The translations under genes and the position numbers were made by a program. The notes beneath the pieces were generated by a model. That model ran no database searches. It saw only the letters and a list, made by a program, of their open reading frames with translations, and had not been told where the DNA came from. A DNA stretch of 61,867 bases, counting the filler, from Hausera hauseri (taxonomy: Eukaryota): NCBI GenBank assembly GCA_046269625.1. It is 13 parts of 13 records of this genome, joined end to end, with 100 filler letters (N's around TTAATTAATTAA, not from the genome) between each part and the next. Parts side by side here need not be neighbours in the genome. Positions count along the whole stretch, not along the records: positions 4,213 to 10,551 come from JBJURY010111210.1; 12 more parts are not named here. The stretch is one strand, 5' to 3'. Position 1 is the stretch's first letter; every line of letters starts with the position of its first letter. Below are positions 4,213 through 10,551 of this stretch, piece after piece.

Positions 4213-6778
4213 ACACAGCTCAAAAACATACAGCTACCACGTACATCAACAGAGATGCGTTCTTTCCTCGGAACCTTGCACTTTATTCATAAGTTTATTC
4301 CACACTGCTCCACTCTAGCCGCCCCATTTGCGTCACTAAGCTCTGACAAGAAAAACAGCATATTCAATGGACCGCCCAGCTAGTCAACGCTTTCGATTAC
4401 CTCAAAGACAATCTAAAAACCGTGGAAATCCTGGCCTATCCCGACTCCCATGCAGAACTCCTCTTAACCACAGGTGCATCTAAAACAGCTGCAGGTACTG
4501 TCCTTTATCAAGTTAAAAATGGATCCCATGAGCCATTAGAATTCTTTTCTAGAAAATTCACGTCACAATAGCAAGGATATTCCACCTTTGACAGAGAGCT
4601 GCTTGAAGTGGTCCTTGCGGTAAAACACTTTAAGCATCTGCTAACCGCACGAACCTTTACAATACAAACGGACCACAGGCCCTTGCTTCAAATTCTCACC
4701 ATGAAATCGCCTTCTCCATGTCAGGAGAGGAAGATATCGTATTTATCCACATTTAATTTTGAAATTATGCACTTAAACGGATTCGACAATTTGGTAGCTG
4801 ACCTTTTGTCCCGATCGGTCAGCTCGAATGATTTTACATCAACTTTTCCTCAATCCATACTTCAACAAAACCATTTACCTCCTGACATCCTTAAATCTAT
4901 TAAATCATGCAAAACGATCGACGGTGTGGCCTTTGACACCTCCAAACCTAATAATCCTAAAATCATCCTTTCTGAAACGCTTCAAAAAGAAGCATTCAAC
5001 AACATCTATTCGTTGCATTATCCTGGTTCCAAGGTCACTTTTCGACTTTTACAACGCCAAGTAGTATGGCCGTCGATACGCTCTGACGTACAGGCATGGG
5101 TTAGGCAGTGTGTGGCATGCCAAAAATCCAAAGATATTAAGCATTTAAAGCCACCATTATATCATTTTCCTTGCACGTCTCGTTTTGAATCTGTTCACAT
5201 TGACCTTGTAGGCCCACTATCCATAGACAACGGCCATCAGTTCATTCCCACAATGATGGACCATTCCGTGCGATGGCCAGAGGCTGTTCCGCTTCGGAGC
5301 ACCAACACAGAAACAATATCAGACGTTTTTATTCGCACTTGGATCAGCAGGTTTGGATCACCTCGCAACATCATTTTGGACCAATGCCCACAGTTTAAAT
5401 CCAACCTGTTTAAAACTCTTGTCAATTGATTGGGAATTAACCATATGCACACGTCATCCTATCATCCTCAATCAAATGGCCTTCTGGAACGCTTCCACCG
5501 AACGATGAAAACGTTTCTTAAAATCCTTGCTGAGTCCAATCGCAGTTGGACCACATTCCTTCGGTACGTTTTGCTTGGCTGCAGGAACACACCATCTACT
5601 TCTGCAGGCTGTTCACCTGCAGAAGCATTATTTGGTACTTCTATCAGACCATTATTCAAGCTGGCTGAGCTGTATAATATTTTTACAGACGAAACCATAC
5701 AAACGGCCCAGAGACACTTTGTTGCGATCAGCAAAGACTCATTTTGTAGACTGTTACACGGCAATAAACCCTACATACTCGACGATTTATATACTGCTAA
5801 GTTTGTATGGCTAAAGAATCAGACGCTGTGTAGTTTTCAACCTCAGTAAGTTGGCCCTTACAAAGTAATTCGTTTACACTCCCACAACGTCATCATTCTC
5901 AAGGGCGTCAAAGAAGTAACAGTCCACATCAACAACGTTAAGCCGGCCTTCTTCATTGACGATACATCCCCTATCGAGACCATTTCTCCACCAACATCTT
6001 TACGCGACGCGCAGAAATCAAAAAATTAATTTCCTATTTCTGTTCAATCCTTTAATCCACTTTCTCCTACGTTGTTTCTCAATCCTTCTACTTTGACTTT
6101 TTCTGAGAGTTCATTCAAATTTCCCCATCCGATTCTGCACTTTCAAGCATCTTAACATCTTTTTCATCCACTGGTGACAACCTGCTTTCCTCACCTACGA
6201 TACTTTCTCCTCTAATCACCACTTCTACTTCACCAATCTCTCCATCTACGCCTTTCATCATTCCAACCTCTTACATGTCACCTTTCAACTCCTTTCCTTC
6301 ACCTTCTTCATCTCCTTACTCTCTTTTGTCTTGCCCCTCTTCAGCGTCCCCTCTCTGTCTCTCCCTCTTTCTCCTTCCACACTTTCGTTATCCCCGGCGC
6401 CCGCTTTCTTTTTTCTTCCTAACACACCATCTTCTAATCCTCTCATTTCCACTTCGCAAATTCCGCCTCTCTTAAACTCTAGTCCCTCCTATCCTTCGTC
6501 TCATCCTCCTTTGACACCTTTTACTTCTTCACTTTGACCTTCACCCAACACAATCCCAAAATCAATATCGGTTATACACCAAAATCAGATGCAAACAAAC
6601 AAACCAAGTATACGAGCAAGCAAAACCGTAAGATTCAACAAATATTGCAGAGTAAAATACAGACAATGAACTGAACGCCTTGAAACAGTCCACTTTTAAA
6701 TATACCTTTACCCTTTCGCGCTTCTGCTTCTCCTTTTGTCGTGCTTTACAATTCTTCAACTCAGCCACTGGGAGATGA
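4213..6778 (+). mobile_element. CsRn1-like gypsy family A: RNase H-integrase, pyrimidine-rich 3' region and PPT
   Basis: TDHRPL, ADLLSR, zinc-binding (LHYPG...CVACQKSK), HIDLVGPL, YHPQSNGLLERFHRT and GPY motifs. Purine tract GGGAGATGA (6770-6778) followed by TGTGG. Confidence 0.95.
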
Positions 6779-7286
6779 TGTGGTGTCTACATGGTTTGCC
6801 TCCTGGCCGAACGAGATCGGTGGTTTGTTGTTCCCTGGGCGGCGCGCAAGTCCGAGACCGAACGCCTCCATTTTCCCGAGTTTTGTTTGGCGGTCGTGGG
6901 GTGGTGAAAAGTACTATATGAGGAACAAGCAAAATCTTGAACTCCTTAACAGCAGTAATTTCTCGGGCAGAACTTGTTCTAATCACGCGTAAAATCGACA
7001 CTGTTTATGTCTATTTTTTTGCGTTTTGCACGAGAAAGTGGCAGGGCAACACATATGGCAGTCAGTGTGCATGCTTTGTGGGCGCTTGTTGTACATGTGC
7101 ATATATAAATGTACTATTTTTTGTTCGTTTTTTTTCTTAGTTGAAACTCAATTTTTGTTTTACTGTACTATGAAGTTTAAAATTTTGGTAGATAATAATA
7201 AATCTTTAGTGCCGAAATTCAAAATGGAGTTTTCCTTTTGTTATACTATTTGTAGATTCTTTTTATCTAACATTATGACGATTAAT

Positions 7287-8060
7287 ATGTCTTCGAACAC
7301 AAAATTGTTTGATCTGAAGAGTTTGTTTGACGGTAATAACTTTTCTGAATGGGCAAAGCGAGCTTTTGCTAATTCCGAATTTTCAAGTAATTTGGATAAA
7401 TTTGTTTCCATCAACTATGGAGATGGTTTGAAAGGACTTCACAGTCATGATTTTGAAAGTAAAAAATGAGATATGCGAAGAAATTATTCAAAAGTATGAT
7501 ATTGACGAATCAATTATACAGGATATTAATAACAGTGGTTTCTATCAATTCCACATTGATTTAAATGCTTTAAAAATGAATATTAAAAAAATTAGACTCC
7601 CTAGTTTGTCATATTTTGAAAAACATGACTCGATATCAAGTAATTGCTGGTAAAAGTGCGTTGACTTTTGTCAAAAGCTATCCAGTCATAACTCGAGTTG
7701 TCTCAATATATGCTGATGATAGCGGCAACGTTGTTTACTTTTCCGGTATCGTTGCTGCACCACCAAACAGTCGTAATAGTTATCGGTACCTGGTGTTCTT
7801 CGATGACGGTTACGTGCAGTACTCTTTCCAAGACGAAGTCTGCCTCGTGTTTCAGCAAAATCTCGACAATTGGGAAAGCATGAATGCCGAATCCCAGGAG
7901 TTCGCCAAAGGATATCAGGACAGTTATCCCGAACGACCAATGGTGCAAATGAAAGTCAGCCAGATCATCAAAGTGAATACAATTCCGAGTCGTGTCCGAT
8001 GAAAGTTGAAAAGGTCGACACCAGTTTTGCATACGTTTGCTTTGAATCGACACATTGCGA
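7287..8060 (+). pseudogene. SETDB1: Intronless, frameshifted, truncated fragment of SETDB1/eggless (tandem Tudor domains)
   Basis: RVVSIYADD-YFSGIVAAPPNSRNSYRYLVFFDDGYVQY...SYPERPMVQMKVSQIIK / KVEKVDTSFAYVCF matches the SETDB1 Tudor region (YAGIVAE..RFLIFFDDGYASY..YPNRPMV..VEEVDGSLV). No MBD or SET domain. Assignment of 7287-7640 is tentative. Confidence 0.85.
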
Positions 8061-8899
8061 ATACAAGTTGGAACTACATTGGTGTCAGAAAATACTTTGC
8101 ATGCCAAGCTCGGCATCATCAGACGTTTTATTTCCAGACAGTACAAACCATCACAGTACTTTTTCTTTGTGTGACAGTGTGGTTGTTGTAACTTTTGATG
8201 ATTGCGTATTATTATATATTTTTCTACTAATGTTATTTTATTTTTGCTACCAGTATGTTATCAAACGTGTCTAAACCACTGCCTATTTTTCGTTGATAAA
8301 ACTTTGGATAGGCCGACACTTCATTTGTGTTTCGCACATCCGCTTGACTGTTGTTCATTGACTGAGTATCACATCTTTGGCGACTCGCCACACTATTCCC
8401 ATATCATGTACAATAGAAGAAATCACAAAAAAACCGCTAAACCTATATCATATTCACTCGACATTAAATCTTACGATCTTCAGAGTCGCTTGGAGACACG
8501 TAACCATAACGATAATAACACGCAACAGTATAAACTTCAAGAAAACGATTTTAGCCGGTGTAATAGCAATAAAAATCATCAAAATGTGTTACATCACCCA
8601 GACAATTTTGACAATACAATCGGTAATGGAAGATGGTATCGAATGTACAAGCCCCAATATCGAGGTTTCATTTTCCCTAAAGACGTTGATGATACAATTG
8701 TACCAACCAAAACGAAACCTGTAGAGCCGGTCAACGGCTGCCGGACCGAATTCGGCAACGAGTGCGTCCCTTCCCGCAAATTGCGGCTCCGTCTCCGGGA
8801 TACCGTGCACCCGGTCTGTGTTCCAATGTCAGTTGCAGTTGCGATTGGCCGTGTGCTCCTCCTGCATCACACTCCCGACTATCAGACACCAATTTTTCC

Positions 8900-10551
8900 G
8901 TTTTTCTTCTAAACAATGAACATGCCACAACATACGCAATAACACAACACACCAAAATAATCCAAATGTACAATCATGTCCGCACTACGACAAACTTAAA
9001 CGACTTTTTCCTCAGTCATTACGGCCTTGTGCTCTCCACTCTTGCCGGTTTCTTTTCTTCAACACAGTCTTACTTCGTTATTCACGTTCACCCCCGTGTC
9101 CATGGTGGCATGAATTCTTCCTTCACCATAGACACCACGGACAAAGCCACCAAACCACCGATCTCCATTACTTACCTACCCAAACAAAGTGCTTCAAACA
9201 CTCCAACACATCACACACTCTCCACTCATTCACCCTGCACAGAATACTTTCTCGACAGCCAAAATTCTACTCAAACATGGTTAAAACTGCATCAATTCTG
9301 GCTCCAATCACAAAACGTCGTTTACCTCTTATCCAAAGCCAACAACCTGTTTTTTTATTTATCTACGTCTATCAAAACCAAAATTACGAACATCATTGAC
9401 ATCCTTCACCACACCGATCCATGTGCTCAACTTTATAATGCCGTTCTTAAACTTACTGAGCCGTCAATCGATTCTATCATTCAAAGGTTCTTCAAAGACA
9501 ATGCCATGGGCCTTCAGATGCCGTCTGAGTTCTTGCGCACATCTTTGTCTCACCTCAATACCCTTGGCGTAACATCTGCGCATAGTCCAGAACTTTTTCG
9601 TCGTTACTTTGTAAACGCATTGCCCCTTCAAATAAGAGCGTTGTTCACTGCGGTCGAAGACTCCACGGCACTAGAAAAGTTAGCTGAACTGGCAGACAAA
9701 GCTTATGAAGTGCTTCACTCACACACAACACCAACTGTCTCTGCGGCATTAACAACAAACCACAAACAACAAAATGCAATGATGCAGCAACAAATTTCGC
9801 AATTACGCACAGAAAACGAAATTTTGCAAAAGAAAGTTAATAATATAAACGAGAAATTAAATGAGTTAACGCTGACTCGACGAGGTTTTTCTAGGGCTGC
9901 TTCCCCCAATGCATTTCATCAACGACAAAAACGGTCACCTTTGCCCGCGCGGTTGTCTATTTGCTACTACCATAACAAATTTGGCAATAATGCTCCGAAA
10001 TGCTGCATCGGTTGTAAATTTTACTCCATCAATTTTAATACAAGCAACATCGTTTGCATCTATCACTCAAAATTTGGAACAAAAGCGCAAAAATGCCTAC
10101 CTGACTGTACCTACAATACACACAATAAAATCAACACCATTAAACCGACACAAAACAGTAAGCCAAACTCACCAGCTACAAAAAAACTGATTTCGCCGCT
10201 AGGACACACGGCAAGTTCTAGAAAAGGTAACAACATGCAAAAAGATAGCCGACACATTTCTTTTGCTGTGTTCACGTTGGAAGCAGCAGTCGTCACTCCA
10301 ATAAAGCAAAACATCAGTTTTCTCATAGACACCGGCGCTACAATCTCTTTATTACGATCAGCACAGCACATCCAAAACAATTTCACTTCAAAAAGCAACT
10401 GTTCACTGCTTCCGGTGGACCTTTACAAACTTTTGATAATACCAAATTAACTTTCACTCTTCCAAATTTCCCAAACACATTCACTAGGAAATTTACAGTA
10501 GCCAATGTACTTACACCTATATTGGATTCAGACTTTCTGTCCCACTATAAT
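8900..10551 (+). mobile_element. CsRn1-like gypsy family A: gag with two CHCC knuckles and aspartic protease
   Basis: Gag motifs PSEFLR and LEKLAELADK; ICYYHNKFGNNAPKCCIGC and VCIYHSKFGTKAQKCLPDC; protease FLIDTGA and IGSDFL. Confidence 0.93.
10180..10221 (+). promoter_or_regulatory. gag-pol -1 ribosomal frameshift site: slippery A_AAA_AAC plus H-type pseudoknot
   Basis: AAAAAAC-TGA followed by stems GCCG/CGGC and CTAGGAC/GTTCTAG. Conserved in other copies at 46416-46457, 25840-25883 and 20707-20750 (minus strand). Confidence 0.75.

Follow-up and report, generated by a model that had tools for sequence, protein, structure and literature searches.

Retroviral oncogene capture and the maize element Bs1 are cases of host-sequence transduction by reverse-transcribing elements, in which host mRNA is taken up by copy-choice at short microhomologies and then spread by transposition. 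The insert in these elements is internal and usually costs gag, pol or env, and a helper is needed. To our knowledge, host gene-fragment capture by LTR retrotransposons has rarely been described in animals, and we know of no case with the insert inside the LTR while the family retains gag and pol. SETDB1 is a canonical silencer of retroelements in other animals, where it lays repressive H3K9 methylation. Gene-fragment capture by plant LTR retrotransposons has been reviewed (PMC13317346). Among the telomeric non-LTR retrotransposons of Drosophila, nxf2 was captured by TART-A, and fragments of piwi and aubergine have been captured as well (PMC7785250; PMC13534243).

We analyzed a window of 61,867 nucleotides of joined contigs from Hausera hauseri (GCA_046269625.1). 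Positions 4213-10551 of this joined stretch (JBJURY010111210.1) hold a piece of an LTR retrotransposon with a SETDB1-derived segment in its LTR. The arrangement resembles oncogene and Bs1 capture in its likely copy-choice origin at short microhomologies and subsequent spread. In contrast with those elements, the insert here replaces most of the putative R/U5, and the family has retained both gag and pol (in contig L043, gag is followed by ~1.07 kb and then pol). As in TART-nxf2, a many-copy family bears a fragment of a silencing gene in an untranslated, terminally duplicated part, and the captured stretch of the host gene looks oddly changed, here by two stops that lie outside exact Logan coverage. 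The two systems differ in element class (a Ty3/gypsy-type LTR element here, a LINE there), in host (here a lophotrochozoan, probably a flatworm) and in the gene concerned (SETDB1 is a chromatin effector, whereas the Drosophila gene encodes a piRNA-pathway factor). Moreover, the fragment here lies inside the LTR, its copies are old and decaying, and the system is described here from its DNA.

Organization of the element and its LTR

An earlier note on this stretch had described the order pol, polypurine tract, TG..., about 2 kb, and gag in one orientation, and sequence reading together with Pfam matches confirmed it. The features, all on the + strand, are as follows.

4213-5849, +, 3' part of pol: RNase H end, integrase zinc-binding domain and integrase core (Pfam matches)
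6770-6778, +, polypurine tract GGGAGATGA, adjoining the 5' end of the LTR (sequence reading)
6779-8078, +, LTR of 1300 bp with termini TGT...ACA (homology with other LTRs)
6779-7172, +, native 5' LTR part, U3 and the probable start of R (common to the sister LTR)
7102-7109, +, conserved TATA-like box TATATAAA within the native 5' LTR part
7173-8062, +, predicted host-derived SETDB1 segment in sense orientation (host match, type-b copies, frame continuity)
7173-7286, +, putative untranslated lead of the SETDB1 segment
7287, +, putative start codon within the SETDB1 segment, with a second in-frame ATG at 7275
7287-7602, +, N-terminal coding sequence from the putative start codon
7603-7610, +, 8-bp scar of a 360-bp deletion (by comparison with type-b copies)
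7611-8062, +, Tudor region, 85% identical to C209944:2164-1712 of the host SETDB1 locus
7679-7825, +, complete Tudor domain, Pfam Tudor_5, a SETDB1-specific model (E = 8.5e-18, 64 bits; cut-off 31 bits)
7969-8061, +, second Tudor domain, Pfam Tudor_4, truncated at the capture junction (weak match in a frame-shifted copy)
8063-8078, +, native last 16 bp of the LTR, the integrase-recognised end (three-way alignment)
8079-8966, +, long leader 5' of gag, with a PBS-like TGGTGTCAG at 8080-8088 (collinearity)
8967-10450, +, gag and the start of the protease (ORF 8762-10450)

The pol of the window copy is spread across two frames. Within 4608-5849, RT_RNaseH is followed by Integrase_H2C2 and rve_3 (Pfam), with the integrase last, and the RT core lies outside the piece. 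The nearest named relatives are Ty3/gypsy-type Pol proteins (30-45% identity), which bear PF17919/PF17917/PF17921/PF00665 and are named 17.6- or Tf2-type Pol. The gag ORF (8762-10450) gave no Pfam gag match; it carries two zinc-knuckle-like Cys/His motifs, and a DTGA motif close to its end marks the protease start. The putative PBS is a TGG-starting motif kept across subfamilies. The leader is collinear with the contigs L003, L005 and L010, which contain a 5' LTR and leader, and the sister subfamily (L035) is collinear with the window from 8059 onward.

In other copies, the LTR homology starts at 6778-6781 and stops at 8078-8081, and the placement of the purine tract relative to the LTR start is the same. 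In the 3' LTRs and solo LTRs of other contigs, the homology ceases exactly at 8078. The start at 6779 that had been proposed for the LTR therefore stands, and its proposed end at 8900 does not: the true end is 8078 and the remainder is internal. The accompanying guess that the ~2-kb stretch comprises one LTR and a leader held, and no direct repeat between its two ends was found within the stretch, as had also been noted. We found the LTR in 5' (L003, L004), 3' (L006, L011) and solo (L007-L009) contexts. The solo LTR of L009 is flanked by a perfect 5-bp TSD (TCAAG on both sides), the flanks of L007 agree at 4/5 TSD positions, and L008 has no clear TSD. The chimeric LTR stayed competent, as its presence at many loci in the form of a 5', a 3' or a solo LTR shows. 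No complete element with both LTRs within one contig was found among the contigs examined. As read from its sequence, the element is a Ty3/gypsy-type LTR retrotransposon of an old, multi-copy family. The order pol-LTR-gag in the window contig may come from two tandem elements with a common LTR; the alternative is a chimeric join, the assembly being of low coverage. Contig C254402 shows this order too, and the join there is possibly chimeric.

The native 5' part of the LTR (6779-7172) is 81-85% identical to a sister LTR variant without SETDB1 (L035-L038), and the putative R and U5 were placed from the TATA box and AATAAA motifs only. Transcription is predicted to begin ~30 bp past the TATA box, with a poly(A) signal near 7197-7202; the SETDB1 part would then fall in U5 and hence in the 5' leader only. 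The statement that the fragment occupies the LTR position is correct in part: roughly 7173-8062, or ~68% of the LTR, would be host-derived, and the native U3 with its TATA box and the last 16 bp persist.

The SETDB1-derived segment and the host gene

The SETDB1-type Tudor segment without a SET domain, as claimed in the earlier note, was borne out by the Tudor_5 and Tudor_4 matches and by alignment with SETDB1 structures. The alignment of a copy with an open frame reached E = 1.5e-24 for the Tudor structures of human SETDB1 and 1.2e-21 for Drosophila eggless, and the Tudor region of the fragment aligns over 120 residues with the human module and with the fly protein (SETDB1/eggless, PDB 3DLM, 7UVE). 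Tudor_4 of the window copy breaks off after ~35-39 of 50 profile positions. In all LTR copies, this match ends at profile position 33-39 (E = 1.3e-8 in copy L025), whereas in the host locus it spans positions 2-49. From the ATG, an ORF-like track can be followed into the Tudor domain; in the window copy, three frame breaks occur near 7462, 7585 and 7973. No MBD, pre-SET or SET domain was found in the stretch with Pfam. Unlike SETDB1/eggless, the fragment comprises the N-terminus, one full Tudor domain and ~70% of the next, and the post-SET is also absent. Because MBD, pre-SET, SET and post-SET are all absent, the LTR piece is by its domain content a fragment of the SETDB1 gene, neither a member gene nor a paralogue, and it would have no catalytic capacity.

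The sole SETDB1 locus in the genome assembly is C209944, which contains both Tudor domains, introns, MBD and pre-SET, and shares 50% identity with Echinostoma caproni eggless; an extra exon of C209944 matches the related protein P0004. The 791 bp nearest the end of this contig are repeated in the genome, whereas the other 1.5 kb are unique. Logan contigs, an independent assembly of a run, cross the capture boundary of C209944 without any difference, at a single-copy depth of ~5 compared with 28-62 for repeat pieces, and in one of them the junction between Tudor region and LTR end is seen as a loose end at position 1712 of the host contig. The LTR segment is intronless, as had been pointed out; this is uninformative, because the comparable 791 bp of the host gene have no intron either. 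We found no contig in the genome that overlaps the end of C209944 at near identity and could continue SETDB1 upstream. All 41 of the 41 genome matches to the N-terminal part are LTR copies or fragments thereof. We infer the SETDB1 origin of 7173-7602 from reading-frame continuity in the type-b copies described below; the host contig breaks off within the captured part and offers no direct match there.

Within the captured stretch, two in-frame stops occur on the host contig, at positions with sense codons in the TE copies and in P0004; exact single-copy Logan contigs reach C209944 position 1810, short of both stops, and a chimeric assembly is possible there. These stops are not predicted by a simple picture of an intact donor. 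We considered an 84-nt in-frame "intron" that would remove both of them and judged it unlikely, as splicing it out would lose sequence that can be aligned to the human Tudor module. A reverse origin, in which the host Tudor region came from the element, was rejected, since the Tudor domains are kept from human to fly and the host locus goes on into the rest of Tudor_4, MBD and pre-SET. Two contigs, C203936 and C356888, were also tried as host-gene candidates, with homology starting at 7286-7289. They were rejected because both reach the LTR terminus at 8078 and their upstream sequences are unrelated. When the open 260-aa frame of C356888 served as query for a word-based protein search, nothing in its length range was returned; longer kin lie outside that range.

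Copy types, decay and the proposed route of capture

The possibility of a single-copy spacer, which the earlier note had set against its own reading, was checked, and the capture stretch proved to be multi-copy: the genome contains at least 48 matches to it at the DNA level and at least 38 to Tudor_5. Dozens of contigs bear both capture junctions and are mutually 8-18% different. Judged by the assembled copies, the SETDB1 piece in the LTR is a property of the family and not of one locus. Two types were distinguished. Type-b copies are longer, with 368-369 bp where the window has 8 bp. Their extra sequence matches the host gene and lengthens the homology by 338 bp, up to where the host contig ends, beyond which they run on in frame to an ATG. 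In type b, the capture extends from the putative start codon (7287) to halfway through the second Tudor domain. Type a is the form seen in the window, and its 360-bp deletion corresponds to exactly 120 codons, in frame. In the tree, type a forms a star-like clade (support 100/99), and the host gene groups with type b.

In the sister LTR variant, which has no SETDB1, an unrelated 405-bp segment takes the place of the capture. This segment is itself multi-copy and is also present in more distant LTRs, which indicates that the fragment replaced native sequence. The earlier note had named an unrelated short LTR elsewhere in the family as a finding that would speak against its reading; the family does have this other LTR form, and it leaves the capture standing.

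The copies were compared without repair, and all rate estimates are pairwise or tree-based. The copy-to-copy dN/dS is 0.65-0.8. Stops number 1.4 per 150 codons, compared with 0.98 in neutral simulations, and 4/16 copies are stop-free, compared with an expectation of 38%. On the internal branch between types a and b, a rough dN/dS near 0.5 was obtained from very few changes. By these measures, the inserted copies, the window copy included, decay neutrally, and selection on the active lineage remains compatible with this pattern. Given this neutral decay, the reading that suits the fragment best is that of a passenger tolerated within the 5' untranslated portion of the element RNA, with no function evident. 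The option of neutral transduction raised in the earlier note fits everything seen.

We consider it probable that SETDB1 was captured once, into the R/U5 side of the LTR by template switching, and was later carried as a neutral passenger. The three-way alignment of the host gene, the capture-bearing LTRs and the native LTRs places a 4-bp GAAT (8059-8062), which host gene and native LTR share, at the 3' junction. Template switching by the reverse transcriptase on host mRNA into U5 appears to be the most likely route. Minus-strand synthesis primed at the PBS would copy the last 16 nt of U5, jump at the GAAT microhomology onto a co-packaged SETDB1 mRNA, proceed toward the 5' end of that mRNA, and then return to the element RNA just 3' of the promoter. 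By this exchange, ~405 bp of native sequence 3' of the TATA box (probable R/U5) would have been replaced by the 5' part of the SETDB1 message in sense orientation. This part would have reached from ~115 bp before the start codon into the middle of the second Tudor domain, with an original length of ~1.25 kb. Once reverse transcription was complete, both ends of the element would carry the chimeric LTR. The single capture would have been followed by many transpositions, and a derivative with the in-frame 360-bp deletion (type a) later expanded in a star-like burst. As to an mRNA or a DNA origin, the comparable stretch offers no intron to discriminate between them.

Competing readings and their implications

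A capture at the DNA level, in which an element beside or inside SETDB1 acquired the fragment by illegitimate recombination or gene conversion and its LTR then became the template of the family, has in our estimation only a slim chance of being correct. Junctions at microhomologies suit DNA repair too, and an RNA intermediate is not demanded, since the comparable host stretch is intron-free. However, the fragment is in sense orientation, begins just 5' of the start codon, and fills precisely the space from the promoter-proximal part to the last 16 bp of U5, as strong-stop copy-choice predicts; an event in one LTR must, moreover, still pass via RNA to reach both LTRs. That the Tudor segment was misjoined to an LTR in a fragmented, low-coverage genome is scarcely credible. 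The assembly is indeed poor (909,086 contigs, with a single-copy k-mer depth of ~5 in one run), and the pol-LTR-gag joins in the window contig and C254402 may be chimeric, but both capture junctions recur in dozens of contigs that are 8-18% apart, solo LTRs carry them in unrelated flanks, one with a TSD, and the Tudor-to-LTR-end junction is seen in a Logan contig too.

Two further readings would give the fragment a role. In one, conceivable if unlikely, antisense small RNAs from the LTR copies would lower SETDB1 mRNA and weaken repression by H3K9 methylation, in the manner of TART-nxf2. The captured gene is itself a canonical retroelement silencer, capture-bearing copies are many (at least 38 Tudor_5 matches against one host locus), and 460/791 host positions lie in exact matches of at least 21 nt with at least one of the 29 copies compared. 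The Drosophila telomeric captures of nxf2, piwi and aub, with matching small RNAs, are on record (PMC7785250, PMC13534243); these papers also report faster host evolution in the captured stretch, which here looks oddly altered by its two stops. On the other hand, the run index gave a single run for this organism, of unrecorded type, and no RNA run, the fragment is sense-oriented with no known antisense promoter, the copies are old (8-18% apart), and the window copy retains one 24-nt exact match only. The fragment-free sister lineage, too, is multi-copy, and no clear copy-number advantage is therefore seen; one silencing-gene capture among the ~250,000 windows scanned could, in addition, be due to chance. 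The other reading, that the LTR-borne frame is translated from the 5' leader into a decoy that competes with full SETDB1 for partners, is highly improbable. Some copies do keep long open frames (315 codons in C356888, 257 in C501098, 255 in C16855, and 255 in C217188, where one stop falls within the Tudor match), and the type-a deletion of exactly 120 codons kept the frame. Nevertheless, the stops (1.4 against 0.98 simulated per 150 codons; 4/16 stop-free against 38% expected) and the pairwise dN/dS of 0.65-0.8 tell against it, the window copy has three frame breaks, and the second Tudor domain, cut at ~70% of its length, could hardly fold. The decoy Tudor protein suggested in the earlier note is disfavored, since inserted copies gather stops and frame shifts at least as often as neutrality would predict. 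The broader proposal that the lineage uses the 5' third of SETDB1 in a transcribed LTR against H3K9-methylation silencing, via small RNAs or a Tudor peptide, is on the present analysis decidedly doubtful.

The capture of SETDB1 echoes the recently recognised theft of piRNA-pathway fragments by Drosophila telomeric elements. If small RNAs against SETDB1 were to prove true, the principle of counter-defence would hold for a further element class, silencing layer and animal phylum. If the lineage did use the fragment against silencing, through small RNAs or a Tudor peptide, the family would be the first LTR-element, chromatin-effector counterpart of TART-nxf2, and the two stops in the captured stretch of the host gene would be traces of conflict. 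If the fragment is a passenger only, as we consider probable, it would still be a clear natural case of host sequence transduced into U5 by copy-choice, and would show the amount of foreign sequence that an LTR tolerates.

Element anatomy and limits of the LTR

The source assembly comprises 869 Mb in 909,086 contigs, one of which, C111210, supplies window positions 4213-10551. This piece carries the following element features.

Features of the element in window 4213-10551
Within 4213-10551, first feature, plus strand: 3' part of pol (Pfam RT_RNaseH, Integrase_H2C2, rve_3)
6770-6778, plus strand: purine tract GGGAGATGA, preceded by a pyrimidine-rich tract; the LTR start (TGTGGTG) is at 6779
From ~8967, plus strand: long ORF with two Cys/His knuckles and a protease DTGA motif at its end; first in-frame ATG at ~8967, second at 9111

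The closest named Pol proteins are of the Ty3/gypsy type (17.6-like, Tf2-like), with identity of only 30-45%. A DNA search of the organism's genome recovered no fewer than 48 matches to 6779-8900, with identities of 81-92%. We aligned the whole piece to fetched contigs of the same genome and found 3' LTRs, in which pol is followed by homology ending exactly at 8078 (L006, L011), 5' LTRs, in which unrelated flank gives way at 6778/6790 to homology running on into leader and gag (L003, L004), and solo LTRs, in which just 6778-8078 lies between unrelated flanks (L007, L008, L009). Because these 3', 5' and solo contexts share their limits, the LTR is 6779-8078, 1300 bp, TGT...ACA. Of the solo LTRs, L009 is flanked by a perfect target duplication of 5 bp (TCAAG), L007 by one matching at 4/5 positions and L008 by no clear one. 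Downstream of 8078 lie a PBS-like motif beginning with TGG and then ~0.9 kb of leader. The 2-kb spacer of the earlier note thus consists of a single LTR and the leader, as suspected there, with the LTR proper ending at 8078 and not at 8900.

The pol-LTR-gag order of the window recurs in L002 (contig C254402, 88% identical); in two of the nine contigs spanning the whole LTR, pol flanks it at one end and leader at the other. Based on end branches of ~0.05 in the captured-segment tree, both LTRs of a single old element are estimated to differ by ~10%, which makes simple collapse of one element's LTRs less likely than two elements in true tandem with one LTR in common, or than a chimeric join of different copies.

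Several other features were observed. Contig L041 (C328272, 1330-3724) joins leader (window 8071-8868) straight to pol (window 5286-6917), as in an internally deleted or rearranged element. Two contigs, C203936 (1337-1338) and C356888 (1958-1959), have LTR homology beginning at window 7289 and 7286, respectively, at the putative SETDB1 start codon, and continuing to the LTR end; the upstream sequences are unrelated and different in each. These starts may mark a hot spot for recombination or truncation, or they may be joins introduced by assembly. A CT-rich tract at 6010-6540, between integrase and polypurine tract (GC skew down to -0.74), is kept as an element part in other copies, and its ORFs are low-complexity Ser/Pro/Leu only. 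The leader ORF at 8202-8912 (236 codons, TTG start, without a Pfam match) is probably not a gene, since L003, L005 and L010 lack ~100 bp (window 8511-8610) inside it. Finally, 18-nt stretches in U3 (6813-6830) and at the gag start (9148-9165) are 94% complementary, with a roughly estimated chance expectation of ~0.02 for the piece; other copies keep both arms, with pairing at 16-17 of 18 positions. Yeast Ty1 RNA has 5'-3' cyclisation sequences, of which these arms are reminiscent.

The SETDB1 segment and the host gene

The SETDB1 Tudor segment that the earlier note placed in the spacer is borne out by Tudor_5, a SETDB1-specific Pfam model, at 7679-7825 (E=8.5e-18), and by 85% identity between window 7611-8062 and C209944:2164-1712; the capture itself is solid. 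One copy with an intact frame can be aligned both to the human SETDB1 Tudor structures (E=1.5e-24) and to eggless of Drosophila. Tudor_4 matches 7969-8061 weakly, in a different frame. Genome-wide profile scans gave at least 38 Tudor_5 and at least 19 Tudor_4 matches; among the matches listed, Tudor_4 ends at profile position 33-39 in every LTR copy and is complete only in contig C209944 (positions 2-49, 68 bits). Further along the same strand of C209944, behind introns, one exon matches P0004, a related species' protein, and another, open over 248 codons, encodes MBD and pre-SET domains. The latter exon is 50% identical to eggless of Echinostoma caproni and 44% identical to a protein of Dreissena, and the genome has no second such locus. 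These similarities make the organism a lophotrochozoan, probably a flatworm. The complete Tudor_4, the introns, the MBD/pre-SET exon with its eggless similarity and the uniqueness of the locus together identify C209944 as the host SETDB1 gene. Only 791 bp at its end are repeated in the genome; the remaining 1.5 kb are unique.

A long antisense open frame was observed opposite the Tudor coding sequence in LTR copies (window 7703-8146, minus strand; L022, 1537-1890; L025, 1187-1540) and in the host gene. Most simply, it is a by-product of sense-frame codon composition.

A search of the run index gave just one sequencing run containing the stretch (share of words 0.35), and no RNA run. Logan contigs, an independent assembly of that run, match host contig positions 499-1810 exactly at a single-copy depth of ~5. 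Exact single-copy contigs cross the capture boundary at host position 1712, and a repeat-depth piece departs from the host there with LTR-end sequence, so that both host locus and LTR junction are supported independently of the assembler.

Junctions, probable mechanism and history of the capture

A sister subfamily (L035-L038) matches at 81-85% identity over 6779-7168 and, past an unrelated 405-bp segment, from 8059 on through leader and gag. The 405-bp segment is multi-copy and common to more distant LTRs, indicating that it represents the native LTR state. Alignments place the 5' junction at ~7172, ~65 bp past a TATA-like box (7102-7109) kept in nearly every aligned variant. At the other end, the 3' junction falls at GAAT (8059-8062), common to host gene and native LTR, so that the last 16 bases of the LTR are native. 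AATAAA motifs occur soon after the 5' junction in native and captured sequences alike (window: 7197-7202). We infer that the captured fragment lies in R/U5 and would therefore be carried in the 5' leader of element transcripts.

The fragment is in sense orientation, starts near the message 5' end and is bounded by the promoter-proximal part on one side and the final U5 bases on the other. Copy-choice during minus-strand strong-stop synthesis would give just this arrangement and is the probable route of capture. The earlier note looked to introns of the host locus for a check; the SETDB1 locus was found and has introns further along, but the comparable host stretch itself is without one, and for this reason a DNA-level event could still have been the source instead of copy-choice.

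The longer LTR form, type b (L031, L032, L021, L033, L034, L042-L044), has 368-369 bp between window 7602 and 7611, versus 8 bp in the window. The additional bases match the host gene right up to the host contig end. Type-b copies have an ORF-like track, broken in places, of ~255 codons from an ATG (window 7287) into the Tudor domain; a further in-frame ATG lies at 7275. In human SETDB1, the N-terminus is about the same distance from the corresponding Tudor domain. Type a, the window's form, is derived, having lost a net 360 bp in frame. A maximum-likelihood tree built from the 453 shared bp shows type a as a star-like clade, supported at 100/99 and with end branches of 0.03-0.07, and places the host sequence on the type-b side. 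The simplest reading would be one capture, with type b first, followed by the deletion and a type-a burst.

Fate of the captured copies and the host gene

Pairwise Nei-Gojobori dN/dS between copies was 0.65-0.74 (ratio of means) or 0.74-0.80 (mean of ratios), and 0.46 between host and copies; dS was higher from host to copy (0.24-0.29) than from copy to copy (0.12-0.21). Sixteen type-a copies average 1.4 in-frame stops per 150 codons, with 4 of 16 stop-free, versus 0.98 and 38% in a neutral simulation with the observed divergence and transition bias. The frame of the window copy breaks near 7462, 7585 and 7973. Long open frames remain in a few copies (C356888 is open over 315 codons), within neutral expectation. 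The dN/dS values, stop counts and frame breaks show that the inserted copies decay freely, a statement about inserted copies and not the once-active lineage; on the internal a/b branch, dN/dS is roughly 0.5, from very few changes. Most likely, the captured fragment has no function.

Exact matches of at least 21 nt to one or more of 29 fetched copies cover 460 of the 791 host positions; in the window copy, one match of 24 nt is left. Small-RNA cross-targeting of the host gene would still be physically possible.

The closest mechanistic parallels to the SETDB1-bearing LTR are transduction by retroviruses and the capture of gene fragments by LTR elements of plants. Its closest functional analogue is found in Drosophila telomeric non-LTR elements, which captured nxf2, piwi and aub fragments and from which small RNAs of the captured part target the host gene (PMC7785250, PMC13534243). 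Here, in contrast, the element class and host phylum are different, the fragment lies inside the LTR, and the gene encodes a chromatin writer.

On its minus strand, C209944 has two in-frame stops, TAA and TGA (1900-1902 and 1827-1829), in the linker between the Tudor domains, inside the captured stretch; LTR copies and P0004 have sense codons at both positions. The stops might come from a repeated stretch having been assembled as a mosaic under low coverage, or might be a real host-gene change in the captured stretch. Both sit just outside the 499-1810 part confirmed by exact Logan contigs, and beyond 1810 the matching Logan pieces are only 95-99% alike, those listed being at repeat depth. A real change would merit attention, since faster evolution is reported for the captured parts of nxf2 and aub (PMC7785250, PMC13534243).
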